A DNA stretch of 64,000 nucleotides, taken from Paramoeba atlantica (taxonomy: Eukaryota > Protista > Discosea). Shown in pieces: positions 3,215 to 60,109 of the stretch (within the stretch, counting starts at the first letter, position 1; every line of letters starts with the position of its first letter). The notes beneath the pieces were generated by a model. It did not search any database. It was given only the letters and a program-made list of their open reading frames with translations, and was not told the DNA's origin. The position numbers and the translations under genes are program-made. Location of the stretch: contig CDRNVI010000039.1 in the NCBI GenBank assembly GCA_977017575.1, positions 248,001 to 312,000 on the forward strand, in the 5' to 3' direction.

Positions 3215-4522
3215 TTACGTTCGGGTACGCTGAGCTAAGGCACTATCCAGTAAAGCACAGTAAGTCATCGCTTCCACGATTGGCACCGCTCGAGGTACGA
3301 CACATGGATCATGGCGTCCTGTGGCACGCAAGGTTGTTGCTTGACCGCTTAGATCATAAGTGCTCTGGGCTTGAGATATTGTGGCGGGAGGTTTAAAAGC
3401 GACACGAAAGTAAATAGGCTGACCATTGCTAATGCCTCCCTGAATCCCCCCACTGTCGTTCTTCGTGGTAGTAAGTGGAACGTGGGTGGTAGGAGGAGGA
3501 GAAGACGGACATGTTTTTTTATGGTGTCTTTGGTCTTCAGCAACTGTTCCGTTCGAAACCAAGTGGCTCGACATTTTGCACACAAAGGGGTCATTGTGTT
3601 CACTTCCACGCATGATAGAGGCGCTGAAACCTGAACCCACGTCAAAGCCTTTCGATGCAGGAAGTGACATCATGGCATGGGCAAGAATTGCCTCGAGTTT
3701 GTCGAAACAAGGCTCGCCCCACCCAGAAGGGACATTGTGTACCACACAAGTCACCACCCCACCGATAGAATCTGCGTGCGCCATCACATCTTCCAGAACG
3801 ATTTTCATGTTAACAGTGGTCTTCACATCAGGGCAGCGCAGTGGCCCGAAGGAGTCAACCCATTCGGATGTCCATGGAACACTGTGCTGGGAGGCATGGT
3901 CCGTTTGTGTTGTCTCGAAAATAGATGACGAGTGAAAGATCGGGAGAACCAGTGCATCGGGTATGGAAATATTCCCTATAGAGGACACGAAGGCGACTAC
4001 CTTGAGTTCGGGGTACCAATCTCGTAATATTTTCTTTGCCACAGCCCCTGCAATGACTCGAGACAGCGTTTCTCTTGCGCTGCTTCGACCACCGCCGCTG
4101 CGTGCGTGTATGCCATATTTGCAGAGATAAGAATAATCTGCATGCGATGGACGAGGAATAAAATCGGTTGGAAAGCTCTCGACCGCTTTCTTATTGCTTT
4201 GCTGTAGCGATTTCGCAACTTCATCAGAAAAATGATAGTCCTCCGGGCGAGCATCTTGGTTATAAACAAGAAAAGATAAAGGGGTACCCAGCGTGAGATT
4301 GTTTTCCGTGTCAATACCGCTCAGTATCTGGACGTGATCCTTTTCTTTTCGAGGTGATGTGTATTGGCTGTGACCTGTGCGCCGCCGATCTACAAAAGGT
4401 TGGATGTCATCCGCAACGGATAATAAAATTTTAGAAGGAACTCCGTCCAGTATGCATCCTACAGCTGCACCATGACTTTCACCGAATGTTGTAACGCGAA
4501 AATAATGCCCGAACGTACTCAT
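3215..4522 (-). CDS. aroC: Chorismate synthase, eukaryote type
   Basis: MSTFGHYFRVTTFGESHG, PRPSHADYSY, GGGRSSARET, DSIGGVV, GEPCFDKLEA, GGIQGGISNG, FRVAFKP and GRHDPCVVPRAVPIVEAM signatures. Confidence 0.97.
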   Translation of the reverse strand: MSTFGHYFRVTTFGESHGAAVGCILDGVPSKILLSVADDIQPFVDRRRTGHSQYTSPRKEKDHVQILSGIDTENNLTLGTPLSFLVYNQDARPEDYHFSDEVAKSLQQSNKKAVESFPTDFIPRPSHADYSYLCKYGIHARSGGGRSSARETLSRVIAGAVAKKILRDWYPELKVVAFVSSIGNISIPDALVLPIFHSSSIFETTQTDHASQHSVPWTSEWVDSFGPLRCPDVKTTVNMKIVLEDVMAHADSIGGVVTCVVHNVPSGWGEPCFDKLEAILAHAMMSLPASKGFDVGSGFSASIMRGSEHNDPFVCKMSSHLVSNGTVAEDQRHHKKTCPSSPPPTTHVPLTTTKNDSGGIQGGISNGQPIYFRVAFKPPATISQAQSTYDLSGQATTLRATGRHDPCVVPRAVPIVEAMTYCALLDSALAQRTRT

Positions 4523-4667
4523 TAGGCATATCCATTACGAAAAGGTATAAATAGAAAAAATCATGTGTACATCATACAGGAAAGTAAGTTATGTGGTGAC
4601 CTAGACAATAGCTACTTTGAAAAGGCATAAGAATATTGTACCTCTTGTAAAAGAAGTGTTATGTATA

Positions 4668-4991
4668 CTCCCCCTCTCATTAATAATTAAAAATATGATC
4701 TATAAACCTTTTTAGTTATAATTATAATTATAGTTTATATTATTAATGAGATTCGATAAGTGATTTTTTCTTATTATGGACTTCAAATTCTTGATTTTCG
4801 AGACACTTCGTTCAACTTGGAAACAAGTTTTAGTGCAAAGTATGTAGTAGAGGTGTCTTTCCAGATAAAAAATGAAGTATTTGAGGTTTATAATTATAGA
4901 AATGAGACTCAGAGTTATAATCTCATTAAACTTCTATAAACGTACCCTTTAATGAGTTTTGGAGGTTTATAATTATTAATGAGAGGGGGAG
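4668..4991. mobile_element. 324-bp MITE with CTCCCCCTCTCATTAATAATTA terminal inverted repeats, flanked by TA
   Basis: 22-bp perfect TIRs at 4668-4689 and 4970-4991. TA at 4666-4667 and 4992-4993. AT-rich non-coding interior. Confidence 0.88.
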
Positions 4992-5504
4992 TACATACAA
5001 GTTGTATACATACAGTACCTTACCACATACAGGGGGGGTCACCAATTTCCGGGGGGTCTAAAATTTATGTCGTGTGAGCTTTTGACCTAATTCCTTCGGC
5101 ATTCAACAGATCTCGAAATTCTAAGCTGTTTTGCGGTATAAAAACCCATTTTAAAAATTATATACAGGGGGTGGCACGAAAATATGGGGGGGGTCAAAAT
5201 TTTTATAGCTTGTCCAATTTTGGAAAGTAGCACCGCATTCGAGAGCTTTCGCAGAGATACGTCTCACCTGATATTGCGTTTCCCGTATCCAGGGGGGTAG
5301 GTCCCTATGCCGAAGGGGCTGAAAATAGCAAAGTTTGAAATTTTGAAAAATATGTCATTTAATATCCACAATCACCTCCATTGTTTTGTAATGTAATCTT
5401 AATACGAGTTCGAAGAGTCTTCAAAGTGTTTAAAAATGTTTTGCTCTGTTCTCCTTTGAACAATTCAATCCCAGATGCGATCGCCGATCGCAATTCTGAC
5501 CGAT

Positions 5505-5552
5505 TTGTGGGGCATACTGAGCTTGTGTGGCATACTGAGCTTGTGGGGCATA
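5505..5552. repeat. 18-bp tandem repeat (ttgtggggcatactgagc, about 2.7 copies)
   Basis: Units start at 5505, 5523 and 5541 (partial), inside the TIR element. Confidence 0.9.
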
Positions 5553-5800
5553 ACGGCAGCAAAGGACCCTGTTTCTTCATAATTCTTTACCAATAATATG
5601 CGGTGGGTGACTTTAAGCTGTCCACGAGGACTGCAACAATGCCGATGTGATTGTAAAACTACCGCTCTACACTCGATTATTGAAAAAAAAGTGAACAAAA
5701 ACAGTGAAAATATAAAGGGGAACACAGTAATATAATAGAAGAAAAAAATATAAAAGGGGGCTCCGGTGGTCCAAAACTGAGAAAAAAAATTGAAAAAAAT

Positions 5801-5833
5801 GGGGGGTCCATGGGGGGGTCCATGGGGGGGGTC
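5801..5833. repeat. Tandem G6-8TC(CAT) motif array inside the TIR element
   Basis: ggggggtccat-gggggggtccat-ggggggggtc. The same GnTC motif occurs twice in each TIR and at 5186-5195. Confidence 0.8.
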
Positions 5834-6428
5834 AAGCAAATGAGTCGAGCATGGTCGAGCAAATTTTTTCGAAAAAATTAGTTTTCGAAAAAAACCCGCA
5901 GAAAGGGTAGCCGGGGTCTTGGCGCGCATTTTCCACCCCCCTACCCGGGGGTGACCCCCCCGCGTATCCGCAGGACGGGTCCGCCAAGTTCGAATTTTTT
6001 CGGAAAAAAAAATTTGAAAAAAAATTCAACTTGGCGAAAAAAATGGCAAAAAAGATATTTTTCCAAAATCGTTTCCCCTATTGTATTTTGATAGTTTGGG
6101 ACCTACACTAGCCTTCTCCGCAGTTGTTTTCGCAAGGTATCCCTTCTTCGAACCGTGGTGCGCCCCTCAAAATGACCCATTTTTGACTAAAAAAGGTGAA
6201 AAAGTATTCTTCGGACCTAAAGGGGCATTTTTGTGTCGAAAGAATGGTATGGTTGGAGTCGCATTCTCTACCCAATACGTTCGGTAGGCTTTCATTCATG
6301 CCTACGAGTGATTTCCCATGCGCAAATGTCGGATTTAGTGCTCTGAGAGCAAAAATACGCGAAAATCACCCCATTTTTACCCGATATTCGGCTATTTTTG
6401 GCTATAATCTTTCCGTTTTCCAGGCTAA

Positions 6429-6549
6429 ATTTTCTTTTTTAGGCTCTTCGTTAAACGCGGCGGTAGTTTTCAACGCGAAGCGCGCAGCATGAGTGACTTC
6501 TAAGTTGAAAACAACCACCGCGTTTAACGAAGAGCCTAAAAAAGAAAAT
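6429..6549. repeat. 121-bp hairpin (46-bp arms, 29-nt spacer), copy A
   Basis: Arms 6429-6474 and 6504-6549 match at 44/46 positions as inverted repeats. Confidence 0.92.
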
Positions 6550-6819
6550 GAAGTTTCGTAGTAAACTTTATTTCGAATAATTTGCAGAATTTTGACCCTA
6601 CTTTTTCCTTAAAAATTTCTCATATAGTCATTTGGTTTTTTATGAGACTTTTTATAGCGCAAAACAGCTTAGAATTTCGAGATCTGTTGAATGGCGAAGG
6701 AATTAGGTCAAAAGCTCACACGACACAAATTTTAGACCCCCCCGGAAATTGGTGACCCCCCTGTATGTGTAAGTAAAGATAGCACAAAAAAATTATTTGA
6801 AACAAATGTCTTGGAATAA

Positions 6820-9819
6820 CTAAGAATTAATGTGTCCCTTCCACGTGTTTGGTAAAAGCTGAGCCAGTGTCTGCCCTGGATGAGTAGAATTATTGAGAAG
6901 ATTCAGAAAGTATAGATCTTCCAACGACGCTGCATATCTGGCGTTATACTTTCTGCTGTAGGCCAACAACGCATCTATCAGATTATTGGAAGAAGAATTG
7001 GAAGAATCCGAATCATTTTTGTGCCACGAAACGCTAACCAACCTCTCCTTTGTATGCGTTATTAAAACCGCGTGCAAGCAAAGATGACCGACGGTTGATC
7101 GCTTATTAACCAAGAGCCAATCTCGACAAAAAAACAAAAGCTGTCGCAAATTATCTTTATCCAAGTCTCTGACAGCATCCAAAATTTCAGGTGAAATACA
7201 GGTGTAAGATTTTGCAGAACTCACAGCTTTGGACTCGTGACGTGTCTTATTGTCTTCCGCGACGCGTGCGGGAAATGCGATTAGAGTAACAACTCGATAA
7301 AGAGTGCGTGGGTGTTTCAACTTCAACGCTAGTCGAAAACATTCCACATATTTTCCATGAGAAATACAATTGTCCAGCTTCTGTTTTTCCTCAACGCGCG
7401 TCCTTCGAGAGACAATGGTCTCTTTCTTCACCTGTTCCGTGACATCAATCCATTTCCGCAAAAACGAACATTCCGCGCCAATATAGAGAGCCTCTCCGTC
7501 TCGATCTGCCGCTAAAGTGGCGGGTTTTCCGAGTTCTGTATCAAACGTGTGAACGGAAGCGTACGTTTGTAAACTCCATACTTTACATACGCCCTCCTCA
7601 TCGACGCTGCAAATTTGAAGCCCATGATTTAGGAAACACATTCGACGTACGGCGGCGGTGTGGCCTTGTAGCGTTACGCTGCAGCAGCCGTTCGAAATGT
7701 TCCATAGTTTAATAGTACCGTCTGAGGATGCGGAGGCAATCATGTGCCGGTTACTAGGACTGAATTGGACGGAGTGTATAGCTTTTTTATGTCCCTGAAG
7801 CTCTCCTTGAGGATGTAATCCTGTGCCTGCTGCCCAATTCCAAATGCGCAGTTTCTTGTCTCGCCCTCCGGTGACTATTTTATCGTTTTGTGGTGAGAAA
7901 TCGATGCAATAAACTGAACTGGAAGAGAGATTCTCAGAAAGTTTTGAGCCACTGTGGATATCGGCAATGGTGTGATCAGAAGAAGCTGTGAACTTAATAA
8001 GTGGGCTATCTGTTTCCATATTTCGTTTTTTTAATGCCTTCGTTAAAGAAGTTAGTAACCATACTTTTAAAGAGTTATCGGAACTTATCGAGGCTAAAGC
8101 AACAACTGATGACTTTTCGTTTTGCGCGAAACACAGCCCCGTGATTGCAGCGTTGTTTCCAACGCATTCTGCAACACAAACGAAATCACAGTTCTCTGTA
8201 GATGCCGTTAATACTGTTGTTAATGATTCGAAACGCAGCTTTTGTTTCCATATTTTGATAGTGTAATCCTTTGATCCTGTAGCAATATATCCTAGGTGCT
8301 GATGTGAAGCTACGCAAAGGACGATATCGGTGTGACCTGCAAGAGAAGTAAAACGGTGTGAACCACCATTGTCCATAAAATATGCGCTTGTCGTATCCCC
8401 CAAAAAAATGATACCAGGGTTCGAAGGCTTTTCGCGGGCGACAGGATATTCTTCAGATTCGTCCCCAACTCCTTGGTCACATGTAATATTTCGAGGCAAT
8501 AGACACATGTCGAGTACGGAATTGCATTGTCCTAAAATATTACTTTTTATTTCACCACTTACGGCGTCCAAAATTAATACTTTACTACTTGCCGAAACAA
8601 ATGCCAGAGTTTTCATTCTTGTGTTAGGAGACAGAAAGGGAAAACTTTCGCCGAAAAGCTCATCGCTCTTCTTCTTGATCACAATCTCTGCTGAACAGCC
8701 TTTGGACTTCGGATTACAGCGTCCTTGTAACCATTTCTCAAGACTGTATATTGAAATATGACCTTCCTCAGAACCGATTGCAAGATGCAGCTGTGAAACA
8801 GTGGATCTTGAAGGAATACAGTAGAGAGACATGGACTGAACATTGTCCTTTAATGCTAGTTTCGCCGAAAGAATAAACTCTTGAGCTTCATCATTCCACT
8901 TAAAGCAGAGAATCAACCGATCTCGGCTTCCGACAAGGAAGCATTTTCTGGACTTCATGTATAAGATGCTCAAAATCGCATGCCTGCTTTCTGAGATCAC
9001 TTGTTTACATTGAAGTTGACCTAAATCCCAGACAAAGATTTTTCCCAATTCGTTCCCCAAGATTACCCAATCACTGTTAGACTTTGAGGAAACTTCCAAA
9101 GAAGAATTATTCTCTGAATCTCTCTTTATCCGGGGCTTCTTTTTCGCTGATGTGCTCTCTACACGCTTGTCTGTTGTTTGAAAACTAAGAAATAAGCACT
9201 GAATCAGTCGTCCAGACTCTTGAGGTCGCAGATAAACATGGTTTTGAAAATCATTTAATTTCCATATCTGTGCACTCCCGTCTGCGCATAAACTGACTAC
9301 ACTGTAAACGTCTGGTGAAAATTCTACTGCGCTAATTGATGTTGAGCGGCGTCCAATGGACCACTTGCGATGCAAATAAAAACGAAGCTCAACTTCATTT
9401 ACGGAAAGAAGCATCATGTCATTGTCAGTAGTAGCGAGAATAATGCGATTGTTTGATGTATCAAGTGAGACGTTCTCCATGGTTGTGCTATTAGACTGAG
9501 GAACACTAGATGCTGCCATAGCCACAATGAAGTCCTCTTGATCTTCAAACGTTGTTTGTGATACCGGCATGGGTAACAACTTATCCTGGGAAGATAACCG
9601 AATCGCAGTTTTACAGTTGGCTGATGACACTATTCTTCCTCGATCAGCGTCGACAAGACAAACGTTTTCGCCGCATGAAGTAAGAAAGTAATTCCGATTG
9701 GGTATCCAGTGGATGTTTCCTGATGTCAGAAGAGGACGAAAAATTGGCTCATCAGTGACTGCGTATTGTGAGCGCAAAGAAACAACATTGGATGAAGCCT
9801 CCTGGAGTCCTTGGGTCAT
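6820..9819 (-). CDS. UTP13: U3 snoRNP WD40 protein Utp13/TBL3
   Basis: Multiple WD40 repeats (GHTDIVLCVA, GHKKAIHSV, ASASSDGTIKLW) plus a Utp13-type C-terminus (ALKLKHPRTLY, LLFFCRDW, ALLAYSRKY). Confidence 0.88.
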   Translation of the reverse strand: MTQGLQEASSNVVSLRSQYAVTDEPIFRPLLTSGNIHWIPNRNYFLTSCGENVCLVDADRGRIVSSANCKTAIRLSSQDKLLPMPVSQTTFEDQEDFIVAMAASSVPQSNSTTMENVSLDTSNNRIILATTDNDMMLLSVNEVELRFYLHRKWSIGRRSTSISAVEFSPDVYSVVSLCADGSAQIWKLNDFQNHVYLRPQESGRLIQCLFLSFQTTDKRVESTSAKKKPRIKRDSENNSSLEVSSKSNSDWVILGNELGKIFVWDLGQLQCKQVISESRHAILSILYMKSRKCFLVGSRDRLILCFKWNDEAQEFILSAKLALKDNVQSMSLYCIPSRSTVSQLHLAIGSEEGHISIYSLEKWLQGRCNPKSKGCSAEIVIKKKSDELFGESFPFLSPNTRMKTLAFVSASSKVLILDAVSGEIKSNILGQCNSVLDMCLLPRNITCDQGVGDESEEYPVAREKPSNPGIIFLGDTTSAYFMDNGGSHRFTSLAGHTDIVLCVASHQHLGYIATGSKDYTIKIWKQKLRFESLTTVLTASTENCDFVCVAECVGNNAAITGLCFAQNEKSSVVALASISSDNSLKVWLLTSLTKALKKRNMETDSPLIKFTASSDHTIADIHSGSKLSENLSSSSVYCIDFSPQNDKIVTGGRDKKLRIWNWAAGTGLHPQGELQGHKKAIHSVQFSPSNRHMIASASSDGTIKLWNISNGCCSVTLQGHTAAVRRMCFLNHGLQICSVDEEGVCKVWSLQTYASVHTFDTELGKPATLAADRDGEALYIGAECSFLRKWIDVTEQVKKETIVSRRTRVEEKQKLDNCISHGKYVECFRLALKLKHPRTLYRVVTLIAFPARVAEDNKTRHESKAVSSAKSYTCISPEILDAVRDLDKDNLRQLLFFCRDWLLVNKRSTVGHLCLHAVLITHTKERLVSVSWHKNDSDSSNSSSNNLIDALLAYSRKYNARYAASLEDLYFLNLLNNSTHPGQTLAQLLPNTWKGHINS

Positions 9820-21836: not shown

Positions 21837-24122
21837 TTATCGACGACGAGTAAGCATGCGTAGGCTCCAGCATTGCGATGGCTGAAACATATGTCCAAGA
21901 TCATGTGTTCGAAGGTTTGTTGACATTCCGAGAGGAACTTCAAGACTTTGAGGTTTCTGTGGCTTTACATCACCCACAGGTTCAACAACGAAGGGGTTTG
22001 AATACTCAGTGTTTGACAAGCCTTTACTCATCTTCGTCAGCAAGGTTTCTGTCCAAACTTGTTGCCTCTGCGCACTAAATTTGCTTGTACAAGATTGTGA
22101 GAATTCTGGATGCTTGTCCGTACCTTGCTCTCTAGCGTTATCCTCCGGCTGTATTGATGGAGTATTTACCTTAGAGTTGCATACGTCATTTGGCAATGTG
22201 CTGGATGTAATAGGTTTAGTCTTTACTTCTTGATGTTTTAGCTTTTCTTGAGCTTTAGCTTCCATACGCTTTAGCCTCTCTCTAATCTTTTTCGGCCGTT
22301 CTCGTTCTCTAACTTTTTTTTTCTTGTCGGAAGTGAAATGTTTTAATTTTTTATCGAAGTCGTTTACCAGATCCATACTTTTTCTGATGATTTTTCTTTC
22401 TTTCTTAACGGACCTCTCTTCTTCCGGAGTTCTCGGAAGACGCACTTCATCAGTGTCATCGAGTAATAGACCTGCACAACGAAACAATCGAACAGATTTC
22501 AGCGCGCTTCGGAGAATGGAGATATAGTGCTCTGCTCCGGGTAGATCTGCCACCTTAGTTTCCACAAGATCCATAAGTTGTCGGAACGGTACTGACTCTA
22601 AACGCCTAACAATCTCGAGTGCAAGAGAAGCCATGTGAACAGCAGTTTCTTTTTCCTCCTTGCTGAACACAGGTGAGAAAAGAGTACATCGCAAAGGGTC
22701 CTTTGTGCCTAACTCATTGCTAGCCTCTACAAATTTTTCTTTCATAAAGCTATATCGCTGCCAACTCATGTGTCTTCCCAAATTGAAGTCAACTTCATAA
22801 GGGTCTTCAATCGCTACGTAATATTGCAGGGACTTTTTTCTCGAACCCGATTGTCCTGCATCGCTTCCCCACTTAAGGAATTCTTTCATTGTGGACTTTT
22901 TGCGATTAATAGTTATAACGTGCGAATCCCAGGAAAAATCATTGGCAAAATAATGGAAAAAGTTTTGCAATAAACGACCCATCTTTCCCCAAAGCTCGTT
23001 GGGAAGGTAACATGGATTATATTGTGGTGCAACGGGCAAGAGTAATGGATTTTCAGGAATGCTCTCAGGGGATACATACTCTACTACGCCCTCGCGAAGG
23101 AGAAAGTGTAGCCACATAACGTGAAAAGCATATGTACATAGCCAGCCACATGAACTATTGTTCAGGCCTGTGCATTTGCTCCAGTTCTTAATCGCATGAG
23201 CACCGACACTAACCATTGGATTCTGTTGGATGTATCGTTGAAGCAGGTAGCTATTTCGAAGTCCAAACGCGCGTGTGCTTAGATCAAAATCTACTGAGAA
23301 GAGAGCTATACGGGCTAGGGCTTGTCGATGAGTCTCATTAGAAAGTCCTGCTTGATTAGATAAAGTCTTAAGGGATAACACAACGGAGGCTATCGGTGCA
23401 GGACCAATTTTTGGCGTGGTTCTCAGCTTTACGTAAGCATCGAATACATACTTTTGCTCTGGAAATGTAATAGTTAGGTAATTCCCATGATCTCCGCTCC
23501 AATTAAATAATAACGGTACATCCGGCAGCATTTCCTGTATCCGTTTTCCAACATTTTCTTGAGATTGAGTTAAGAGATCGCCACTGTACCCAGGTTTTTG
23601 AAATATTACGATGAGACAGAGAGAGTTGCCTTCCTCGTTTCCGTTTCCCTGAGGCACATCCGTGCCGCAGTACTCGATAAGCGATACTTGGTTCAGGTTA
23701 TTCTTCTTCTCACCCCGAATTTTCGAATACTTTAGAATTGGAACACGTGCACCCGTGATGGATAGTACGTGACGGGGTTCCGCAAGCCTACCCAATGTCG
23801 AACTGCATTCTAAAATAACCAACCTCTCGTTGTGAGGAGGCCAGCGCCCTTTCGCCCATGCATTCGGATCGATACATGTGAAGTCAATGTCGGAGTCTCC
23901 GTCCCACATTTGGTGCGCAACACAGCTCCCAAAAACATACACATGGGCTCCAGGATAGTGCCGCCGGACAACTTGCTCGAGTTGCTCACGTGCTTGTAAC
24001 ATCCTGTTAAACTTCATTCTGCCTTTCGTGGTATCTTGCGGATACAAGCGTAGGTGTCCGCCCCATAAAGTATATAGCTTTTCTTGCTTTCGAGCTTTCG
24101 ATTTCGAAGATTCTTGGGTCAT
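21837..24122 (-). CDS. Terminal uridylyltransferase, RET2/TUT3-like
   Basis: FGS...DSDIDF nucleotidyltransferase motif, ARVPILK, an inserted middle domain, FDLS...GLRNSYLL, IKNWSK, and the nucleotide-recognition loop IEDPYEVDFNLGRH. Confidence 0.9.
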   Translation of the reverse strand: MTQESSKSKARKQEKLYTLWGGHLRLYPQDTTKGRMKFNRMLQAREQLEQVVRRHYPGAHVYVFGSCVAHQMWDGDSDIDFTCIDPNAWAKGRWPPHNERLVILECSSTLGRLAEPRHVLSITGARVPILKYSKIRGEKKNNLNQVSLIEYCGTDVPQGNGNEEGNSLCLIVIFQKPGYSGDLLTQSQENVGKRIQEMLPDVPLLFNWSGDHGNYLTITFPEQKYVFDAYVKLRTTPKIGPAPIASVVLSLKTLSNQAGLSNETHRQALARIALFSVDFDLSTRAFGLRNSYLLQRYIQQNPMVSVGAHAIKNWSKCTGLNNSSCGWLCTYAFHVMWLHFLLREGVVEYVSPESIPENPLLLPVAPQYNPCYLPNELWGKMGRLLQNFFHYFANDFSWDSHVITINRKKSTMKEFLKWGSDAGQSGSRKKSLQYYVAIEDPYEVDFNLGRHMSWQRYSFMKEKFVEASNELGTKDPLRCTLFSPVFSKEEKETAVHMASLALEIVRRLESVPFRQLMDLVETKVADLPGAEHYISILRSALKSVRLFRCAGLLLDDTDEVRLPRTPEEERSVKKERKIIRKSMDLVNDFDKKLKHFTSDKKKKVRERERPKKIRERLKRMEAKAQEKLKHQEVKTKPITSSTLPNDVCNSKVNTPSIQPEDNAREQGTDKHPEFSQSCTSKFSAQRQQVWTETLLTKMSKGLSNTEYSNPFVVEPVGDVKPQKPQSLEVPLGMSTNLRTHDLGHMFQPSQCWSLRMLTRRR

Positions 24123-33811: not shown

Positions 33812-33913
33812 TATACAAATTATGTACTCTCCAGGACGTTTTTCCAGGACGTGAATGGTGCGCATAGCTGCAATAATAATTTTTGTAATAATATTTATTA
33901 ATTTCCGTCGCTA

Positions 33914-34014
33914 CGTTAAACGAGGTGGTTGTTTTCAACTTAGAAGGCACCACAGTTGCGCGCTTCGCGTTGAAAACTACCTCAGCGTTTAACGAAGAGC
34001 CTAAAAAAGAAAAA
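33914..34014. repeat. Hairpin copy B, inverted relative to copy A, with one arm truncated
   Basis: Reverse complement of 6429-6529 with a few substitutions. The 29-nt spacer at 33940-33968 is the same length as in copy A. Confidence 0.88.
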
Positions 34015-34107
34015 TTGACGAAAGATCATGCATATTATATTCTCTTTTTGGGGGTGTTCACTCGTGCGACAGTGCGCGCTTCCCTTTCTTGTCATGCGTA
34101 GGAGCCC

Positions 34108-51978: not shown

Positions 51979-52091
51979 TCTTCAAAGTAAAACTTATCCT
52001 ACCATAAATACCCTATAAAAAATCCATTTCTATTCTTTCCCTCCTACACTCTATTTCTTTCCACCATACACCCGCAAGCCAGCCCCCCCCT

Positions 52092-53192
52092 CTACCCCTC
52101 CCCTCGCCCCCCCTCCCCCTCCCTCACCCTCCTCAGCAACCCCTCCACCACCCCCTCACTCAGCCCCTCCACATACCCCGTGGCGTCCCTTAACGTGTGG
52201 TGGACCAGCCCCCGCACAACCCCCCCCCGGTCCCCCACCACCTGCTCCCTTCGCCGGGTGCGCAGGAACCCCTGCGCGGCCCCGTCGAGCATACGCATCT
52301 TCATCCCGGGGCTCACCCCGTCAAGGTACCGCCGGACCCGCACCACGTACTCCGCGGCGCGGGAGAGCTCGGGCTGCACCTCGTCGTAGGTGAAGGGGGG
52401 GACGGCCCAGGCCTTGCGGAACCGGATGTGGTCCCAGAACACGCGGTACGCCGCGACCAGGCGGGCGACCTGGGCCTGGGAGGCCGGGGAGAGGGGGAGG
52501 GGGAGCGCGTCGAGGGGGGAGGGGTCGGGGCTGTGGGGGGAGCTGTGGGGGGGACGATGCTGTAGGTAGTGTGGGGGACTGTGTTGTGGACTGTGTTGTG
52601 GACTGTGTTGGGTGCTCAGTGGGGAGTGGTGTGGGGGACTGTGTTGTGTGCTTCGTTGTGGACGGTGCTGTGTTGTCCGTTGAGGGTTGTGTTGGGGTTT
52701 GTGTTGGGGACTGTGCTGGGGGTTGTGTTGCCTGCTGTGCTGGGATCTGTGTTGGGGGGTGTGTTGCGTACTGTGTTGGGAGTTGTGTTGTGCTCTGTGT
52801 TGGAGATTGTGTTGCGTGCTGGGTTGGGGGTTGTGTTGGAGATTGTGCTGGGGGTTGTGTTGAGGGTTGTGTTCGGGTTTGTGTTGTGGAGGATCTTGTA
52901 GGATGAAGGCGTTGGAGGGGACAGAAACAACGGGGAGAGTGGAATCCGTGGTGGTGGTGGGGGTGGGAGAGGGGTGGGATAAGGTGAAGGCGGAAGAGGA
53001 GGGGGAGGAGGATGAGGGTAAGGAGGGGGTGGGGGAGGGTTGTGTGGGGGAAGGGGAGGAGGGGGTAGGGGAGGATGAGGGGGAGTGGGGAAGGAGGGCA
53101 AGGGCGTGTGGGTAACTGGATGGTAAAGGGTTGGGGTCTCGGAGATGGGGTGGGGTGAAGCGGTAGAGGAAGCGGAAGAAGGTACGACGCAT
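52092..53192 (-). CDS. Low-complexity Pro/Ser/Gln/His-rich protein, probably mitochondrial
   Basis: MRRTFFRFLYR presequence, Pro/Ser tract, (P/T)QH(N/S) tetrapeptide repeats and a short globular C-terminus. Confidence 0.65.
   Translation of the reverse strand: MRRTFFRFLYRFTPPHLRDPNPLPSSYPHALALLPHSPSSSPTPSSPSPTQPSPTPSLPSSSSPSSSAFTLSHPSPTPTTTTDSTLPVVSVPSNAFILQDPPQHKPEHNPQHNPQHNLQHNPQPSTQHNLQHRAQHNSQHSTQHTPQHRSQHSRQHNPQHSPQHKPQHNPQRTTQHRPQRSTQHSPPHHSPLSTQHSPQHSPQHSPPHYLQHRPPHSSPHSPDPSPLDALPLPLSPASQAQVARLVAAYRVFWDHIRFRKAWAVPPFTYDEVQPELSRAAEYVVRVRRYLDGVSPGMKMRMLDGAAQGFLRTRRREQVVGDRGGVVRGLVHHTLRDATGYVEGLSEGVVEGLLRRVREGEGGRGEG
52560..52890. repeat. Degenerate 12-bp tandem repeat encoding xQHx tetrapeptides
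   Basis: ctgtgttgtgga-like units repeated through the region. They explain the spurious Val/Cys/Gly-rich plus-strand ORFs. Confidence 0.85.
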
Positions 53193-53569
53193 GGGGAGGG
53201 GGGGAGGAGGGCGGAGGGGAGCGAAAAAATGAAATTGGTATATTTAAATTTGTTTAATAAACCTTTATTTTGTGAAGGAGAAAGAATTAAACATTCAAGA
53301 AATGGTCTTCTCTATTCAAGGAAAGGAAATAGATAATGTATAATGTTAGTCAATATGCCAAAACTTAGTAAAAATAGGGCACCATATGGAGCTATAAGCT
53401 TGGACTACTAAAGCACAGATAATTTTTGCGTTCAAAAATAGATTTAGTTTGTAGGAAAACTGAGAAGACGTAGATCTCCCTCTCTCTTGAGCTAGATGAC
53501 AAAGCTTCTGGACAAACAGTGTACGAAACAACCTCCGTACCTAAAAGTCTGTCACGCCATTCAGAACGT

Positions 53570-55243
53570 CTAGTATTTTTTCTTTGTCGCCGCGATCAAT
53601 TTGGTGCGAAGGGAATTCGAACAGATCGAAGAAGCTGTCAAATCCGAGCTAAGTGAACTAAGTGATCGGGAAAGCGAGGATTGCCGAGAAGCTGAGGAAC
53701 TAAAGTCAGAACTCATGTCGGAAGCCTCTGCGCTGCTAAGCGAGTCAGAATCAGACTCGTTATGGGTATGGGCTCTGTGTTTCCGTGCGTCTCTGTGCCG
53801 TTCTGCATCTCTCGCAGGAAAACCTTTATGTTCTTTGGATTGAATAGGATGGTCGTGAGTGGGACATTGTTCCCTTGTATGATGACTTCTGCGTTCATGA
53901 TGATGATGATGGTGGTGGTGATGCCGATGTCGATGTTGGTGCGCATGAGGATGATGTGTAGAAGAACGCAGAGCATCACGCCCCTGGTACTGTGGTGAAG
54001 AATGTTTATCTATAGGCCCTGGATGTATCTCCTGAGTCGTACCCTTTTCTATTGGAGAGAGATCGCGCTGCTCCGAGGGGAACATGTCGTTGGCCCGAAA
54101 AGAGTCCATCGTGGCGAGTTCGGGGTGTTGCCGACGCTTTCTGGATCGAGATGTCTCCGGTTCACTCATGTTAAGAAGGAGCGAAGTTACGGGGTTGTAG
54201 GACTCCACAGGCACTGGTTCTTTTACTTTCTTTTTGCTTCGTTTTGGCACCTCGCGGTACGGTTTTCGGTGCGAAGAAGTCTCCGCAATGTGCGGATCCT
54301 TTGTATTCGCCACATCCTCTGTAGGAGGTAAAGCACGTTCAGGTACTTGTTTTAAGGGCTCCAGCACAGTCGGACGCTCTGTGGTACTCAACTTGTCCCC
54401 CGCTGTCTTCGGCACCTCCATGTCACATGTTGGCTCGACAGAAAAACTTCTCTCCTTCACCACCTCAGATGTATCTAAGATACATCTATCTTCCACCTTC
54501 CTACTTTCCTGCCGAAAAAGTTCTCCTTTCTCCTTCCCCTCTCCCGCATCATCGTTCAGCTCCGGCTCTGCCATTCCAATACCCCATGACCGCAACGCCT
54601 CCTCCGTGAGTGCGCTCGGTTCTATCCGCTCCCTGTTCTCAACCGGATTTTCAACCCCTGATTCTGCCTCCTCCTCACCTTCTCTACGAGGAGATGGTTC
54701 CGATGTCTTCACCTTAGGGGGCTGTGGCTTACGGCGTGCCAGCCGGGAGGCGACGCGATCCCACCAGTGGTGTCGAGCTGGTCGTATCGTCTCCACGTCC
54801 CTTCCCTGGAGATAGTCCTGCAGTGAGGTCTCGGAGGCGCTATCCTCCGGGAAGTACAGCAGGGTGAACGAGATCGCGGGGTCCAGCACGGTGTGGGCCC
54901 AGCGCACGAGACGCTGCAGGGCCTGGCAAGGGCTCATGGTGTTGCTGGCCTCCCCGGGGGGAAGAACGAACGGGGGACGCCAGCTCCCGAGGGGACAAAT
55001 CTCGATACCGTGACGCTGGACAAGGTGGAAATAGCCCGGACTCTTGCCAATGGCGACGTTTAGCATGGTGTCCGCGGCGACGATACAGAACACAAAGCTA
55101 CGAGGGGGCACGATGGGACGGGGGGTGCTGAACCGCTCGTCTACACCGCGAAAGAAGGCAACGTTGTCGAGGTCGACGAACAGGACGTGATGGAGGTCTG
55201 CTCCGGGTTTGGGTCGCTCAAGGATGAGGCAGTGGGAAGACAT
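53570..55243 (-). CDS. Protein with an N-terminal PIN-like (ZNF451/PIN_11-type) domain and a disordered His/Ser-rich tail
   Basis: VLFVDLDNVAFF...LDPAISFTLL...RDVETIRP, followed by a poly-His tract and a Ser-rich C-terminus. Confidence 0.65.
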   Translation of the reverse strand: MSSHCLILERPKPGADLHHVLFVDLDNVAFFRGVDERFSTPRPIVPPRSFVFCIVAADTMLNVAIGKSPGYFHLVQRHGIEICPLGSWRPPFVLPPGEASNTMSPCQALQRLVRWAHTVLDPAISFTLLYFPEDSASETSLQDYLQGRDVETIRPARHHWWDRVASRLARRKPQPPKVKTSEPSPRREGEEEAESGVENPVENRERIEPSALTEEALRSWGIGMAEPELNDDAGEGKEKGELFRQESRKVEDRCILDTSEVVKERSFSVEPTCDMEVPKTAGDKLSTTERPTVLEPLKQVPERALPPTEDVANTKDPHIAETSSHRKPYREVPKRSKKKVKEPVPVESYNPVTSLLLNMSEPETSRSRKRRQHPELATMDSFRANDMFPSEQRDLSPIEKGTTQEIHPGPIDKHSSPQYQGRDALRSSTHHPHAHQHRHRHHHHHHHHHERRSHHTREQCPTHDHPIQSKEHKGFPARDAERHRDARKHRAHTHNESDSDSLSSAEASDMSSDFSSSASRQSSLSRSLSSLSSDLTASSICSNSLRTKLIAATKKKY

Positions 55244-55561
55244 AAATGGGGGTGAGGAGAATAAACGAGTGGTTTTGTATTTTGGCGAATAGGTGGTGCA
55301 CGTGTTGCAGAAGTAGAAAGATGTACATCTCGTAGACTACTTCAAAGAAATGAATGTTTTTATGACAGTAAATGTTTTTTAGTGAGTTAGGTGATGTGTT
55401 GAGAGACCATAGGAATAACAGAAACTGAAGAAAGGATACGAAACGTGATTGAACGTTGCGTTCTAAATTAAATTTGTGAAAAATGAAAAATTTCTAAAAG
55501 TGTGAAGTTGTTCTGAAAAACAGAAGACTGAAGGTACGGAATTGAAAGCCATAAACCTACG

Positions 55562-56695
55562 TCATGGCATGTCAACATTTTTCTTACAAAATCGCCGAAC
55601 ACACCGTACAGCTCGCAACCAGTCAGCATCCCTCACTTTCATTCTGGCCCACTGTCTATCACAATCTCCGCGTGAGTACTTCGGCGACTTTGCACTAAAC
55701 GTGTGAAAAAGATCCTCAAAATCGAATAACACCCCATCGGGTCTTGACTGTGCAACCAGGTGCAAACTTTTCAGTGCCAGCCCGATTTGAATCCAAGAAC
55801 TGTAAGCGTGTGCTACGGATTCTTCCAGCCGAGGGACAGTCTTAATTACAAAATCCATACAGTTATCGTAGCTATCTTCCATTTTAACGACCGGGGCTGT
55901 GGACTTGGACGTGATTAGCTCGCGCACAACAGAACGCGGGCGGGTGACTAAGGAGAGCTCAAAAAGTTCGTCGGGGCAGGGATTCCAGTGTAGTGGTCTC
56001 TTCAACGCAAGCTTGTCCAGAGTGGCGTCATCACCAATACTCTTTACACAGTCGTACAACCGCAGCTGTCCCCCAGTACGGTAAATTCCGGAATCAAGAA
56101 CTTCCTTCTTCCAGCGTAGCTTGAGGGAACGCGCCACAATGCGGGAGAAATTGCACAAATCCGAGATGTCCTGGAAAGCCACATCCTCTGCGATCCGGGC
56201 ATGTATGTGATAGGAAAGTTTGTTCACGGCGAAACTCTGCAGGACGACCAGTTTCGAGAATTGCTTCCCGTAGGCGAGTTGCAGCGTACGCTCTGTTTCG
56301 TCGCAGGTGGCCTCCATAAGAAGCTGTCCTTGTTGCTGCGCATGCGGATCTGACGGAGACAACGGAAGGTCGAGATCAGCACAAAAGTCCAACGGAACCC
56401 CCTCTCGTCCAAAGACCGCGTGTAGGGCACGCTGCTCTTTTGGGAGGGTAAGCACGTATCGGTAAATCTCTCTCGCCCCCGCCCCGGGCCATGAGATAAA
56501 CTCCGCAAAGGAACGTAGCTTGGACTTGTTGAGCAAAGAGATGACGTAATCGTCTGTGCTTACGATGTTGCAAAGATCTCTCAAGTTTCGAGAGACCAGG
56601 GGACGAACGCTGAACATAGGGGAGATGTAAAGGTATGAGGTGTGTGAAAAATGGCAAGATGATGTAGGAAGCTGTATTACGGTTTCGTATACCAA
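55562..56695 (-). CDS. AEP-family primase with PriCT-2 domain, mitochondrial PRI1-like (likely start ATG at 56617)
   Basis: Motif I DFCADLD, motif II KLSYHIH, motif III LDSGIYR...LRL. PriCT-2 YSSWIQIGLALK...FSAKSPKY...CDRQW. Presequence-like MFSVRPLVSR. Confidence 0.85.
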   Translation of the reverse strand: MVYETVIQLPTSSCHFSHTSYLYISPMFSVRPLVSRNLRDLCNIVSTDDYVISLLNKSKLRSFAEFISWPGAGAREIYRYVLTLPKEQRALHAVFGREGVPLDFCADLDLPLSPSDPHAQQQGQLLMEATCDETERTLQLAYGKQFSKLVVLQSFAVNKLSYHIHARIAEDVAFQDISDLCNFSRIVARSLKLRWKKEVLDSGIYRTGGQLRLYDCVKSIGDDATLDKLALKRPLHWNPCPDELFELSLVTRPRSVVRELITSKSTAPVVKMEDSYDNCMDFVIKTVPRLEESVAHAYSSWIQIGLALKSLHLVAQSRPDGVLFDFEDLFHTFSAKSPKYSRGDCDRQWARMKVRDADWLRAVRCVRRFCKKNVDMP

Positions 56696-56845
56696 GGTTT
56701 AAAAACAAAGGTAATACATATGAGGAAACATATGAGTTTTGTAAACATATGAGTAACTAGCTCAACATCCACATTAAGTGACGCTTTTTATCTCAAAAAA
56801 ATGTGAATGCCCAACTGGAAACTCGGATGTAGCAGATTTAGCAGG

Positions 56846-57553
56846 CTACAAGATTTCACCCGATTTTCTAAGTGCCTTCGTATTTTTGTGAATAAGCAGA
56901 AGGTCAGCGGGTGTCCCCGACTTGTAGTTTTCATTTTCATGATCAAAGTCGGCCTCTTCCGCCTCGTGGAGAAAAGAAGGCAAGACATTATTGGGCTTCG
57001 TTGCTTTTTCTTTTTTCCTGGGTTCGTGCCGTCGAATTTCTACCGAGTTCTCCATGTTTTTTTGTGACTGTTGTTTTTCAGCAATTACGCTTTGTGTTTG
57101 GTGTATTTTAGTTTCCAGACCACGTAGGTACGCATCGCGTTCATCGCTACTCATATTCAACACTCGTTCACGCTCCGCCTGTAAGACATCTTCCTCAAGT
57201 TTTAGAGCGTGATTTTTGGCGCGTTGCTGTGCTTCCTTTTGTTTGATATCAAGTTGTTCTACCGATTGTTTAAGTGCTTCAAGAGAATCGGCAGAGCTTT
57301 CCGCGGTTTTGTCTTCTAACGCATCCAAAAATTGGCGCTTCTGTTCCTCCGCCTGACGTGCTTTCTCATTTCCCCTTGCGACCTCTTCCTCCTTCTTTTT
57401 CTGTTTCAATGCACGTTGACGCATTTTTGCGGCGTGCTCAATATGATTTCTGCCGCTTTTAGCATCCGAATCTGGACACGCTGCTTCTTGTTGCGCTTTC
57501 AATTTTAGCGCTTTAATCTGATCTCGGTTCATACGGATAAATTTTGGAAACAA
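56846..57553 (-). CDS. Charged coiled-coil hypothetical protein
   Basis: Gene-strand ORF rich in K/E/Q heptads. Confidence 0.65.
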   Translation of the reverse strand: MFPKFIRMNRDQIKALKLKAQQEAACPDSDAKSGRNHIEHAAKMRQRALKQKKKEEEVARGNEKARQAEEQKRQFLDALEDKTAESSADSLEALKQSVEQLDIKQKEAQQRAKNHALKLEEDVLQAERERVLNMSSDERDAYLRGLETKIHQTQSVIAEKQQSQKNMENSVEIRRHEPRKKEKATKPNNVLPSFLHEAEEADFDHENENYKSGTPADLLLIHKNTKALRKSGEIL

Positions 57554-57745
57554 GGATGTTAGAAGGTAAAAAGACTACCAGCGATTAGTTTCCCATAGAC
57601 TATTCTGAATCGTTTTAGTGAACCCGATGTCTACATTCCCACACCCTTGTCATGTTTACCCTCCACATTATTTGCCAAAATTGAACAATGCTACAAGTGC
57701 TACAATTACTATACTAACCCCAACGAACACACCCTCTGTTTCGGA

Positions 57746-58960
57746 CTACAAACCCTCCTGCTTACTCCGCTGTACCCAAACCGGATACGCCACCTCCTCC
57801 GCATGCCTAAGAGCCGTCACTCTCCAATTCATTTCCGCACCCACCGCACACGACGGACCCCCCCTCTCCCCTCTCCCCACCGGACCCAGACACATCTCCA
57901 TCACGGTCATCTTCGCCGGAACATACGGCACCATGGTCCGCATCACCGGATCCAACGTCACCGAGCGAAACACCTTTAACAACCCCCGCGCCCAGGGGCG
58001 GGTCGCGGCATAGGTCGCGGCCTGGTGCCGTAACGGCACAGAGCTCTCCCCCTCCCCCTCCCCGACGCTGCCGGGCTCTGTCCCCGCGACAGCCCCCCCG
58101 ATCGCCCCCCCCTCGGGGACGTGAATCCGTTGGTGACACCAGCGGTAGTGCGGGAGGAACCGTGCGGGGTTGACCCGTACCGTGAGCACGGCACGGATGC
58201 GGAGGGAGAGGAGGGGACCGGTGGGGTCGTGCTGCCCGCTGGGGGGTATGGAGGAGGGGAAGAGGGGGGAAGAGGCATTGGTGGGGTGAATCGGGATGTC
58301 GAATTTTCCCGTGTCGACCTCAGAGGAGGGGATGGCGGTCCACGTAGGGGAGGGGTTCATAGGGGGGGTGGAAGGGGTGGAGGGTTCTTGTTCCTTTTGT
58401 TCTTCTTGCTTTTGTTCTTGTTCTTTTTGTTCTTGTTCTTGTTCTTTTTGTTCTTGTTCTTGTTCTTTTTGTTCTTGTTCTTTTTGTTTTTGTTCTTTTT
58501 GTTTTTGTTCTTCTTGTTCTTGTTTTTGTTCTTTTTCGTTTTGTTCTTGTTTTTCTGTTTCCAATGTAGAGGGGTGCGTCACGGCCACGGGGGGATGGGG
58601 TATTCGATGAGCGTATTCGAATTGGGTCACGGCGATGTGTTCTACCCAGTCGGAGCAGTGTGCGAGTTGGTAGTTGGATTCCTGGACGGCACGAAGGAGA
58701 GTGGGGGAGAAGAGGGGGAGGGGGGGTGGAGGAGAGGACCCGGTTGTGGCATCGCCGGGGGTGCTGTTTTGTGACTCAGGGGGGTCAATGCTGGGGTCTA
58801 CGGCGGCGGCGTAGCCCAGGGTGACATAGGCCTGTCGCAAGCCGGAGGAGAAGTTACAGTTGTGTCGCTGGGCCCACTTTACGAGGGGGAGGGGGAAGAC
58901 ATCCGAGGGGGGAAGCGTGGCATAGGTCTGTAACGCGGAAAGAAGTCGGGAGGAGTGCAT
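57746..58960 (-). CDS. Hypothetical, probably mitochondrial, protein with an EQK repeat insert
   Basis: MHSSRLLSAL start, central (EQKEQ)n tract and globular flanks. Confidence 0.7.
   Translation of the reverse strand: MHSSRLLSALQTYATLPPSDVFPLPLVKWAQRHNCNFSSGLRQAYVTLGYAAAVDPSIDPPESQNSTPGDATTGSSPPPPLPLFSPTLLRAVQESNYQLAHCSDWVEHIAVTQFEYAHRIPHPPVAVTHPSTLETEKQEQNEKEQKQEQEEQKQKEQKQKEQEQKEQEQEQKEQEQEQKEQEQKQEEQKEQEPSTPSTPPMNPSPTWTAIPSSEVDTGKFDIPIHPTNASSPLFPSSIPPSGQHDPTGPLLSLRIRAVLTVRVNPARFLPHYRWCHQRIHVPEGGAIGGAVAGTEPGSVGEGEGESSVPLRHQAATYAATRPWARGLLKVFRSVTLDPVMRTMVPYVPAKMTVMEMCLGPVGRGERGGPSCAVGAEMNWRVTALRHAEEVAYPVWVQRSKQEGL
58385..58560. repeat. TTG/TTC/TTT microsatellite-like tract encoding Glu/Gln/Lys repeats
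   Basis: ttgttcttgttcttttt units in tandem. Confidence 0.9.
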
Positions 58961-59167
58961 TAAAAGGAAAACACTAGGTGGGTATTGCTATAATTAAGAG
59001 AAGATACATGGAAAATCATTGTGTAGCCCATGAAGGCCTACCCCACACTTATCAAGTAAGGCAAAAGAAAATACTGAACAAATATTCTAATAATTTTGAC
59101 CTTCATACGAATATTACTAATTTACAAAGGATAAAACATTTTTTTCGATTTCGTTGTGTTGGCTACG

Positions 59168-59938
59168 TCACAGAAGCGTTTTCAAATGCTTCCACCGATA
59201 TTCGATTTGATCTGGAGATCTCCCAGGAGCCCACACGTCCTGATTGGCGTCGTATATTTGCCGATACCTGTGCCCAAAAAGTCGCACCCCTGTGCGTATC
59301 GCCTCGTCCTCCCGGGGAGAAAACGGTGCCGTGAGCCCTCGCCGGGAGGGGTGGTGTCCCATCGGACCGCACGTTGGGGTAGTTTGCTGCTCCCCTGGGA
59401 TCTCGTTAAAATTATTGTACTGCTGCACACAAAGCGGGGTGCTTGTGAGACACGAAGAGGGGAGAATAGGGAGTGCGGCCCCGTAATCCTCTCTACAGGC
59501 CTGGGTGATATCATCGCAGAGACCCCGAATGTGAGCACATTCCGCAGCGACGTCACCCACATGTGAACTCTCCTGGTGTGGCGTCGCTTGGGTTACGAGC
59601 TTACATAGTCGTGACAGAGAAGATCGCGTGCGCCCTTTCAACGTCAAGAGCGCAAAAGGAAGAATATCCTGCAGAAATTCCAATGCTGCATGTAGGGTGG
59701 CTATTTCAAGGTGGTTTGACGTATCTTGACCTTGAGATAATTCCGATTGCTCACATCGTAACACGGCCTTTTTGCATACATAAGCGGCAAGAAGCGGTGC
59801 CAATGTAGAACATTCGATGAATTCAAACCAAAAACGCTCGTTCCCAGTTATGGTCTGCAGGCTTAACAACGCGTCGGTCGCATCACTGTTTCCGTATTGC
59901 AAGTTCGCCTGGAGGATCCGGAGTATATTTTCATACAT
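59168..59938 (-). CDS. Myb/telobox-type protein, TRF-like
   Basis: C-terminal FSPREDEAIRTGVRLFGHRYRQI...GRSPDQIEYRWKHL single Myb repeat and a helical N-terminal region. Confidence 0.72.
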   Translation of the reverse strand: MYENILRILQANLQYGNSDATDALLSLQTITGNERFWFEFIECSTLAPLLAAYVCKKAVLRCEQSELSQGQDTSNHLEIATLHAALEFLQDILPFALLTLKGRTRSSLSRLCKLVTQATPHQESSHVGDVAAECAHIRGLCDDITQACREDYGAALPILPSSCLTSTPLCVQQYNNFNEIPGEQQTTPTCGPMGHHPSRRGLTAPFSPREDEAIRTGVRLFGHRYRQIYDANQDVWAPGRSPDQIEYRWKHLKTLL

Positions 59939-60109
59939 AAAATTGTTTCAAACAGAGACCACTTTTTTCTAAAACAGTGTTCTAAAATTAATTCCCTTTA
60001 CACAGAAAAAAGCTGCTGTAGTTAATTTATGCAAAAACATTATTCAACTTTTTTGACTAATTTTTCTTTTTTGAACAAAGAGATTCGTAAACATTGAAAA
60101 AACGTGCTT

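Follow-up and report, generated by a model that had tools for sequence, protein, structure and literature searches.

The ends of Tc1, Tc3, and Sleeping Beauty begin TA/CAG (the slash standing for the outer edge of the element), and the target consensus of Tc1 is CAYATATRTG. Merlin, reported by Lopes et al. 2021 (PMC8101967), is the first DNA transposon of kinetoplastids, and its copies in Bodo saltans and Perkinsela are degenerate or inactive (PMC8101967). Retroelements only are listed for Bodo saltans by Jackson et al. 2016 (PMC4728078), only ingi-type retrotransposons are mentioned for Perkinsela by Tanifuji et al. 2017 (PMC5601477), and none of the 57 trypanosomatid genomes covered by a survey from 2025 yielded a confirmed class II element (PMC12278014). 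For trypanosomatids, the published surveys know retroelements alone. In the literature searched, no report was found of Tc1-like elements in kinetoplastids, including Bodo and Perkinsela, with Merlin as the sole DNA transposon. The locus described here lies in a stretch of 64,000 nucleotides (hereafter the window; C39:248001–312000) of a 45.7-Mb assembly that comprises 248 contigs and two haplotypes. We are confident that positions 5030–6763 of the window represent a non-autonomous, rearranged Tc1-like member of the IS630/Tc1/mariner superfamily in a kinetoplastid-type nuclear genome.

Judged from its sequence, the contig is of kinetoplastid type, with an RET1-like TUTase and a one-strand, intronless gene array. 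Twenty-six of the 27 window ORFs of at least 220 aa lie on the minus strand, tightly packed and uninterrupted, and the sole plus-strand ORF of this length is nested in a larger minus-strand ORF. The ATP synthase beta is closest to that of T. brucei (950 bits, versus 855 bits for Euglena), the ORF at 21837–24122 is most similar to RET1, RET2, and TUT4, TUTases of T. brucei, and the kinetoplastid gRNA-binding MRP family is found in the genome. The placement in a kinetoplastid genome, made earlier in a first-pass annotation of the window, is upheld by the TUTase, the ATP synthase beta, the one-strand array, and the MRP family. A paraflagellar-rod gene was not found in a genome search that had no positive control.

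The two terminal arms of the element are inverted copies of each other (~115 nt), aligning over 113 nt with 96.5% identity, four substitutions, and one-base slips in two G runs; CAGGGGG is the inward-read start of both. With a TA on either side, the flanks are laid out as ..ACCACA-TA / element / TA-TGTGTAAG.., and subtraction of the element and one TA gives the empty site CACATATGTG. The long TIRs with this start, the TA duplication, and the empty site had all been claimed before, and each was re-read in the sequence as claimed. The outer symmetry CACATA/TATGTG is part of the flank and lies outside the repeat, since unrelated sequence is present beyond the TA in other copies. Of the 2,297 bp that separate a Utp13-like gene (6820–9819) from the chorismate synthase gene (3215–4522), the element takes up 1,734 bp, with 57 bp between it and a eukaryotic gene. 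The left arm is 94–98% identical to arms of the copies on C90, C16/C29, C59, C9, and C40; among the differences between the two arms of the window copy, two are variants that recur elsewhere in the family, whereas a third is confined to this locus, where both haplotypes have it.

These ends define a family, called A-type here. A genome-wide search with the 116-nt arm gave 218 first-look candidates on many contigs, and all 40 of those scored were significant. At readable loci, TA adjoins 19 of 19 independent family ends. Farther outward, 18 of the 19 ends have A at position −3; at position −4, 16 have T and 3 have C, and 15 have a purine at position −5. The target preference of the family is (R)YA/TA/TR(Y), usually RTATATAY, which overlaps CAYATATRTG. 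The description of the insertion point as an exact Tc1 consensus site is therefore correct as a literal fit to the consensus, but the site is only one of the variants that the family preference allows. The A-type copies differ from each other by 3–11%. Short copies on C90 (816 bp), C16/C29 (774 bp), and C59 (1,623 bp) have both ends as in the window copy, and the short A-type copies keep C-terminal transposase remnants with at most 87% protein identity to a sister subfamily. For the C59 member, the predicted empty site (the flanks plus one TA, 32 nt) occurs twice as an exact match on C23, with four further matches at one or two mismatches and none for the reversed control. Because these paralogous uninterrupted sites contain a single TA, the C59 member is read as having inserted into one copy of a different repeat, duplicating the TA; such sites are evidence for the family, through the C59 member, and not for the window copy. 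When an empty allele was sought for the C90 copy, its flanks proved to consist of repeats, and similarity to the partner contig C48 began only 68 bp outside the element.

Inside the window copy, homology to the A-type family is limited to the two outer segments (Table 1). At the left, blastn identity to C90, C16, C29, and C59 covers element positions 1–135 only; past position 135, the canonical copies run on as ..TTATATATGA.., while the window copy breaks after the TA at 5163–5164, which is directly followed by a new CAGGGGG terminus. This terminus opens a truncated fragment of a second Tc1-like element, called B-type. Its terminal repeat (~5165–5287) is 83–84% identical to element ends at two other loci, L057 and L069, and the matching end in L069 adjoins a transposase with a 375-aa frame. 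In a tblastn comparison, the L069 transposase aligns with the coding remnant within the fragment at 51 positions, stop included, and is 41% identical there (E 6e-11), and the sister-subfamily transposase matches it more weakly. At the right, the A-type end resumes with 92–97% identity to C90, C16/C29, C59, and C9. Two ORFs inside the element, at 5465–5929 (−) and 6196–6492 (+), have no Pfam family and are treated as chance frames. The window copy is a non-autonomous, internally scrambled Tc1-like element: it lacks an A-type transposase gene, and its sole coding remnant comes from another Tc1-like lineage.

Table 1 Features of the Tc1-like element and its target site (window coordinates).
Feature	Position	Strand	Basis
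TA target-site duplication, left copy	5028–5029		Sequence; 19/19 independent family ends adjoin TA
TIR, left arm of A-type element	5030–5144	+	Arm alignment; family matches
A-type end, 135 nt; downstream of transposase in full copies	5030–5164	+	blastn vs C90, C16, C29, C59 (95–97%)
Second Tc1-like element (B-type), truncated fragment, at TA 5163–5164	5165–~5646	−	CAGGGGG start; L057/L069 similarity
Remnant of last 50 codons and stop of B-type Tc1-like transposase	5359–5511	−	tblastn with L069 transposase
Three tandem 18-nt units, broken edge of B fragment	5505–5558		Repeat family D4
R900, nested abundant ~0.9-kb non-coding repeat	5647–6549	+	Genome search with whole element
R900 terminal palindrome, 121 nt (46-nt arms, 29-nt spacer)	6429–6549		Inverted pair I2, 96% complementary
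Filler between R900 and A-type end, 19 nt	6550–6568		Family homology resumes at 6569
A-type end, 195 nt; upstream of transposase frame in C9 copy	6569–6763	−	Family identity 92–97%
TIR, right arm	6649–6763	−	Arm alignment; one private substitution on both haplotypes
TA target-site duplication, right copy	6764–6765		Sequence; family ends

The interior also contains R900. A genome search with the whole element returned 2,053 first-look candidates; of the matches that were scored, almost all cover element positions 618–1520, at 95–96%. R900 has sharp boundaries in more than 30 copies and also exists in head-to-tail arrays; in the window copy, the canonical TTGCG of its 5′ end is absent or mutated. 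No target duplication is consistent across R900 copies, and none is present at the window copy. Against Pfam and Rfam, no family exceeded the threshold, the Rfam matches being sub-threshold and of hairpin type only, and no tRNA was found in R900. The possibility that R900 is a typical passenger of Tc1-like elements was rejected, as only the window copy and L057, among about 20 copies examined, lie inside such elements. Because R900 does not usually accompany Tc1-like ends, it is read as a separate, presumably nested insertion; the lack of a target duplication at the window copy speaks against this reading, and recombination or gap-repair filler may instead account for its presence.

A single coding copy with A-type ends was encountered, on contig C9, where a 195-nt end, 97% identical to the right end of the window copy, precedes a Tc1-like reading frame, a nested insertion of another repeat (~0.9 kb) lying between the two. 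The open frame at C9 is 352 aa long, of which the first 138 aa were read; the assembly contains this coding copy only once, and its match to the catalytic half stops at residue 144 of 235, so that it probably ends short of the region with the catalytic E. A demonstrably complete transposase gene for the A-type subfamily was not found in the genome, and the family may have no working transposase. The sister subfamily consists of TA-flanked elements of 1,539–1,561 bp with TIRs of ~99 nt that are 88% alike to the A-type TIRs, the differences between the two clustering at positions 14–22, between the two G runs. Its transposase has about 364–377 aa, and a DDE_3 ORF lies between sister-type TIRs in L027–L030. 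DDE_3 transposases between matching TIRs, named in the first-pass annotation as a check of its reading, do exist in these relatives, but not in the window copy. The 377-aa ORF in L028, which is open and is the one sister ORF read, carries K instead of the catalytic E.

The Pfam domains of these transposases are HTH_23/HTH_28 (residues 34–77 in L028), HTH_Tnp_Tc3_2, and DDE_3, with HTH_Tnp_Tc3_2 over the cut-off in L029 and L022 and just below it in L028 (residues 116–166) and L030. The NCBIfam IS630 profile matches over nearly the full length (E 4e-24), with a score below the model cut-off. The best solved structure is the catalytic domain of Sleeping Beauty, to which the D, D, and E positions align; the first and second D are 95 residues apart and the second D and the E 32 residues, giving DD32E, a signature for which the literature searched held nothing relevant. 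Because this spacing departs from the canonical DD34E, an origin of the element in another TA-targeting branch, mariner or pogo, was considered, and it is very improbable. The third catalytic residue is E and not D, the Pfam matches are to DDE_3 and HTH_Tnp_Tc3_2, the closest structural relative is Sleeping Beauty, and the ends share the TA/CAG start of Tc1, Tc3, and Sleeping Beauty; the mariner family PF01359 also has no match in the genome, which is a weak negative as it has none in any control genome either. Together with the TIRs, the TA duplication, the multi-copy family, and the transposase remnants, this agrees with the earlier reading of the element as a relic of a cut-and-paste transposon of the Tc1 superfamily.

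Searching the genome with the sister transposase yielded 794 candidate loci, at least 14 of them at 95–100% protein identity, and three open frames of 376–378 aa are found among these near-identical loci. Further transposase classes have ~58%, 42%, and 37–40% identity, many with open frames of 374–397 aa, and a genome search with Pfam DDE_3 gave 676 candidates, of which all 150 that were scored exceeded the cut-off. The proposal that this lineage hosted a class II transposon family is accordingly far surpassed, with 676–794 candidate DDE_3/Tc1-like loci. Outside the genome, a word-based search of a collection of 5.8 billion sequences gave protein relatives of at most 29% identity, viral and metagenome contigs contained no match to the transposase protein or to the conserved TIR pattern, and for the possible horizontal acquisition raised in the first-pass annotation no outside donor was found by these searches; the breadth of divergent subfamilies within the genome would fit a long residence.

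The element is present a second time in the assembly, at C40:597197–599360, with the same structure and the same flanking context. The C40 contig is assigned to the other haplotype on the grounds that both contigs carry the ATP synthase beta gene with 100% identity and at an equal distance of 1,958 bp from the element, and that the flanks differ by ~0.5%: the 1.5-kb flanks of the two haplotigs show 7 and 9 substitutions (99.4–99.5% identity). Inside the element, the alleles differ by 1.1–1.8% substitutions and by an indel of ~430 bp within R900. The occurrence of the element with matching flanks on two independently assembled haplotigs argues that it is not a misassembly. An assembly artefact or contamination, such as a foldback join, a bacterial IS630, or a foreign contig, might be suspected in view of the repeat-rich assembly containing both haplotypes and of the transposase match to the bacterial IS630 profile as well; this explanation is largely refuted and scarcely credible, since, besides the agreement of both haplotigs in structure and flanks, dozens of contigs hold copies, each flanked by TA, a eukaryotic gene lies in the immediate vicinity, the array with the RET1-like TUTase is of kinetoplastid type, the IS630 score stays under the model cut-off, and the best structural match is a eukaryotic Tc1-type enzyme. 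Neither misassembly nor contamination, raised in the first-pass annotation as what could undo its reading, agrees with an identical structure on C39 and C40 and with copies across many contigs.

The composite structure was found by the genome search at the window locus and its allelic site only, and no empty allele of the window site exists in the assembly, both haplotigs being occupied. As, in addition, no demonstrably complete transposase gene was found for its subfamily, the window copy is a fixed, scrambled relic; the uniqueness of the composite means that there is no sign of movement after the scrambling. The low divergence of its TIRs had been taken in the first-pass annotation to suggest recent activity. 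This suggestion does not hold for the window copy, with both haplotigs occupied, the interior replaced, and the composite nowhere else, and it is also opposed by the apparent truncation, before the catalytic E, of the sole coding copy with these ends (C9). An alternative is that the copy is still mobile: as a MITE-like passenger, it would have been carried to its site not long ago by the sister transposase acting in trans, and the TIRs would differ so little for that reason. The nearly intact TIRs with a single substitution private to the locus, the 88% identity of the sister TIRs, and the sister subfamily itself, with at least 14 matches 95–100% alike in protein and three open frames, speak for this alternative. 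It is nevertheless unlikely in light of the insertion on both haplotigs with flanks diverged by 0.5% and the element by 1.1–1.8%, the restriction of the composite to one locus in the genome, the 3–11% distances among A-type copies, and the position of the subfamily TIR differences at 14–22, where a Tc1-type transposase would be expected to bind. We therefore retain the relic reading, under which the window copy would no longer move at all, or could do so only where a transposase supplied in trans accepts its ends. For the sister subfamily, in contrast, recent activity is plausible, its copies being 95–100% alike in protein with open frames of 376–378 aa.

Putting these observations in a sequence of events, of which both the order and the identity of the mobilizing transposase are inferred, we propose the following history. 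The transposase of the family, which combines two helix-turn-helix domains with a catalytic domain of the DDE type (DD32E), would bind the TIRs of ~100–117 nt, each carrying two GGGGGGTC motifs, cut the element out, and reinsert it where a TA is available and becomes duplicated, favoring (R)YA/TA/TR(Y). An A-type element, probably already missing much of its transposase gene, would have landed in the 2.3-kb spacer between the Utp13-like and chorismate synthase genes. A second Tc1-like element may then have entered the internal TA at 5163–5164, the abundant 0.9-kb repeat R900 would also have arrived, and deletions may have stripped the remainder of both interiors.

The copy itself is ordinary, and it is the abundance of Tc1-like transposons in a kinetoplastid-type genome that makes the locus of interest. 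It is probable that a kinetoplastid lineage, aflagellate as far as the weak negative test goes and possibly Perkinsela-like, harbors a large, diverse, and possibly still active Tc1-like (DD32E) population, composed of several subfamilies (37–97% protein identity) at hundreds of loci, some with open frames of 374–397 aa, and that the window copy is a decayed member recording a nested Tc1-into-Tc1 insertion. If true, this would overturn the view of kinetoplastids as devoid of class II elements save for the relic Merlin. Hundreds of TA-duplicating Tc1-like elements, some with open transposase frames, would imply that polycistronic transcription does not keep class II transposons from thriving, would bear on the timing of class II loss toward the trypanosomatids, and may provide a native cut-and-paste system for kinetoplastids. 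To this picture the window copy contributes internal anatomy, namely nested insertions, deletion, and a haplotype indel, and a target preference at the level of the family.

The elements are worth comparing with the known systems that they resemble. They share with Tc1, Tc3, and Sleeping Beauty the TA duplication, the TA/CAG ends, an autonomous size of ~1.55 kb, a CAYATATRTG-like target preference, and a single transposase of ~360–377 aa with a two-part HTH and DDE_3, from which they depart in having DD32E instead of DD34E, TIRs of 100–117 nt with two G runs, and a kinetoplastid-type host. In common with the bacterial IS630 elements, they have the superfamily and the TA target, and the IS630 profile spans almost the whole protein; unlike these, they score below the profile cut-off, lie between eukaryotic genes on numerous contigs of the nuclear genome, and carry long TIRs. 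With the MITE-type derivatives of Tc1/mariner elements (Stowaway in plants and MADE1/Hsmar1 in humans), the window copy shares a composition of TIRs and sub-terminal sequence, the TA duplication, the lack of a working transposase gene, and the dependence on supply in trans. It differs from them in being 1.7 kb long and refilled by a Tc1-like fragment and a 0.9-kb repeat, while the canonical short A-type copies, at 774–816 bp, retain a recognizable transposase C-terminus. Finally, the kinetoplastid Merlin elements (PMC8101967), which occur in non-trypanosomatid kinetoplastids, are likewise class II elements with TIRs, but belong to another superfamily (IS1016/IS1595-like DDE), generate 8-bp duplications, and exist in few, mostly degenerate copies, whereas the elements described here are Tc1-like, duplicate TA, and number in the hundreds.

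When the genome was searched with the whole studied element, a Tc1-like relic at window positions 5030–6763, the bulk of the approximately 2,000 first-look candidates consisted of R900, the abundant non-coding repeat nested inside it. The 5′ end of R900 is sharp, (A)TTGCGGTGGTTG.., and resembles one arm of the 121-nt terminal palindrome carried by the repeat itself; head-to-tail arrays occur on contigs C21, C41, C91, C103 and C71 of the same assembly, and comparison of R900 copies revealed no consistent target duplication. Motifs of the form ATGGGGGGGGTCAA lie within R900, similar to those of the Tc1-like TIRs.

Both haplotypes are present in the assembly, on C39, the contig of the window (loci L001/L011), and on C40 (L002/L012/L032), diverging by about 0.5% in the unique flanks and by 1.1–1.8% in the studied element. 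The C40 allele of the element is approximately 430 bp longer than that on C39; in it, an 88-bp fragment of the R900 5′ end is followed by 261 bp of other DNA, which precedes a complete R900 copy beginning with the canonical start. A further case of nesting is found at locus L057, where one Tc1-like element of about 1.6 kb, with 115-nt TIRs at 92%, contains an R900 copy. The 32-nt insertion target of the Tc1-like copy on C59 is itself a repeated sequence, and its two copies on C23 form an inverted pair 3 kb apart; a further element may therefore have this sequence as its terminal repeat.

Features located in the window, on other contigs (C) and at loci read from them (L)
Feature	Location	Strand	Description
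R900	window 5647–6549		~0.9 kb, non-coding repeat
Solo fragment of R900 palindrome	window 33911–34016
Small TIR element	window 4667–4994		328 bp, TA-flanked; ends CTCCCCCTCTCATTAAT.. / ..ATTAATGAGAGGGGGAG
Chorismate synthase gene	window 3215–4522	minus	full-length; Pfam E 1.7e-118
Back-to-back Tc1-like element pair	L057 840–2600 (C56)		junction ..CCCCCCTG TA TA TA CAGGGG..
Repeats of 32-nt C59-copy target	C23:227681–227712	−
	C23:230767–230798	+
	C103, C14
	C59:148878
Sister-subfamily transposase ORF	L028 236–1369 (C66:270270–271403)	minus	377 aa, open

The small TIR element, situated 35 bp upstream of the studied one, is 100% identical in both haplotigs. It has at least 40 genome copies at 85–93% identity, many matching the full 1–328 span, and its family is probably another Tc1/mariner-type MITE family. 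In the sister subfamily, the open transposase frame of L028 does not imply activity, because Lys replaces the catalytic Glu (NLIKNLW, versus NLIENLW in L029 and L030).

Elsewhere in the assembly, a 463-aa open frame with identical scores, a distant relative of ATP synthase beta (26% identity), is present on each of ten small contigs (C108, C113, C114, C116, C123, C124, C131, C133, C134 and C229), a pattern pointing to a unit in multiple copies, or to another replicon or organism within the assembly. In the window, GC content rises to 0.52–0.55 at 52001–60000, against about 0.41 elsewhere, and GC skew is strongly positive (0.17–0.27) at 52–54 kb and 58–60 kb. Finally, the chorismate synthase gene sits within the kinetoplastid-type gene array; a shikimate pathway is not a known feature of trypanosomatids, and the origin of this gene may therefore be of interest.
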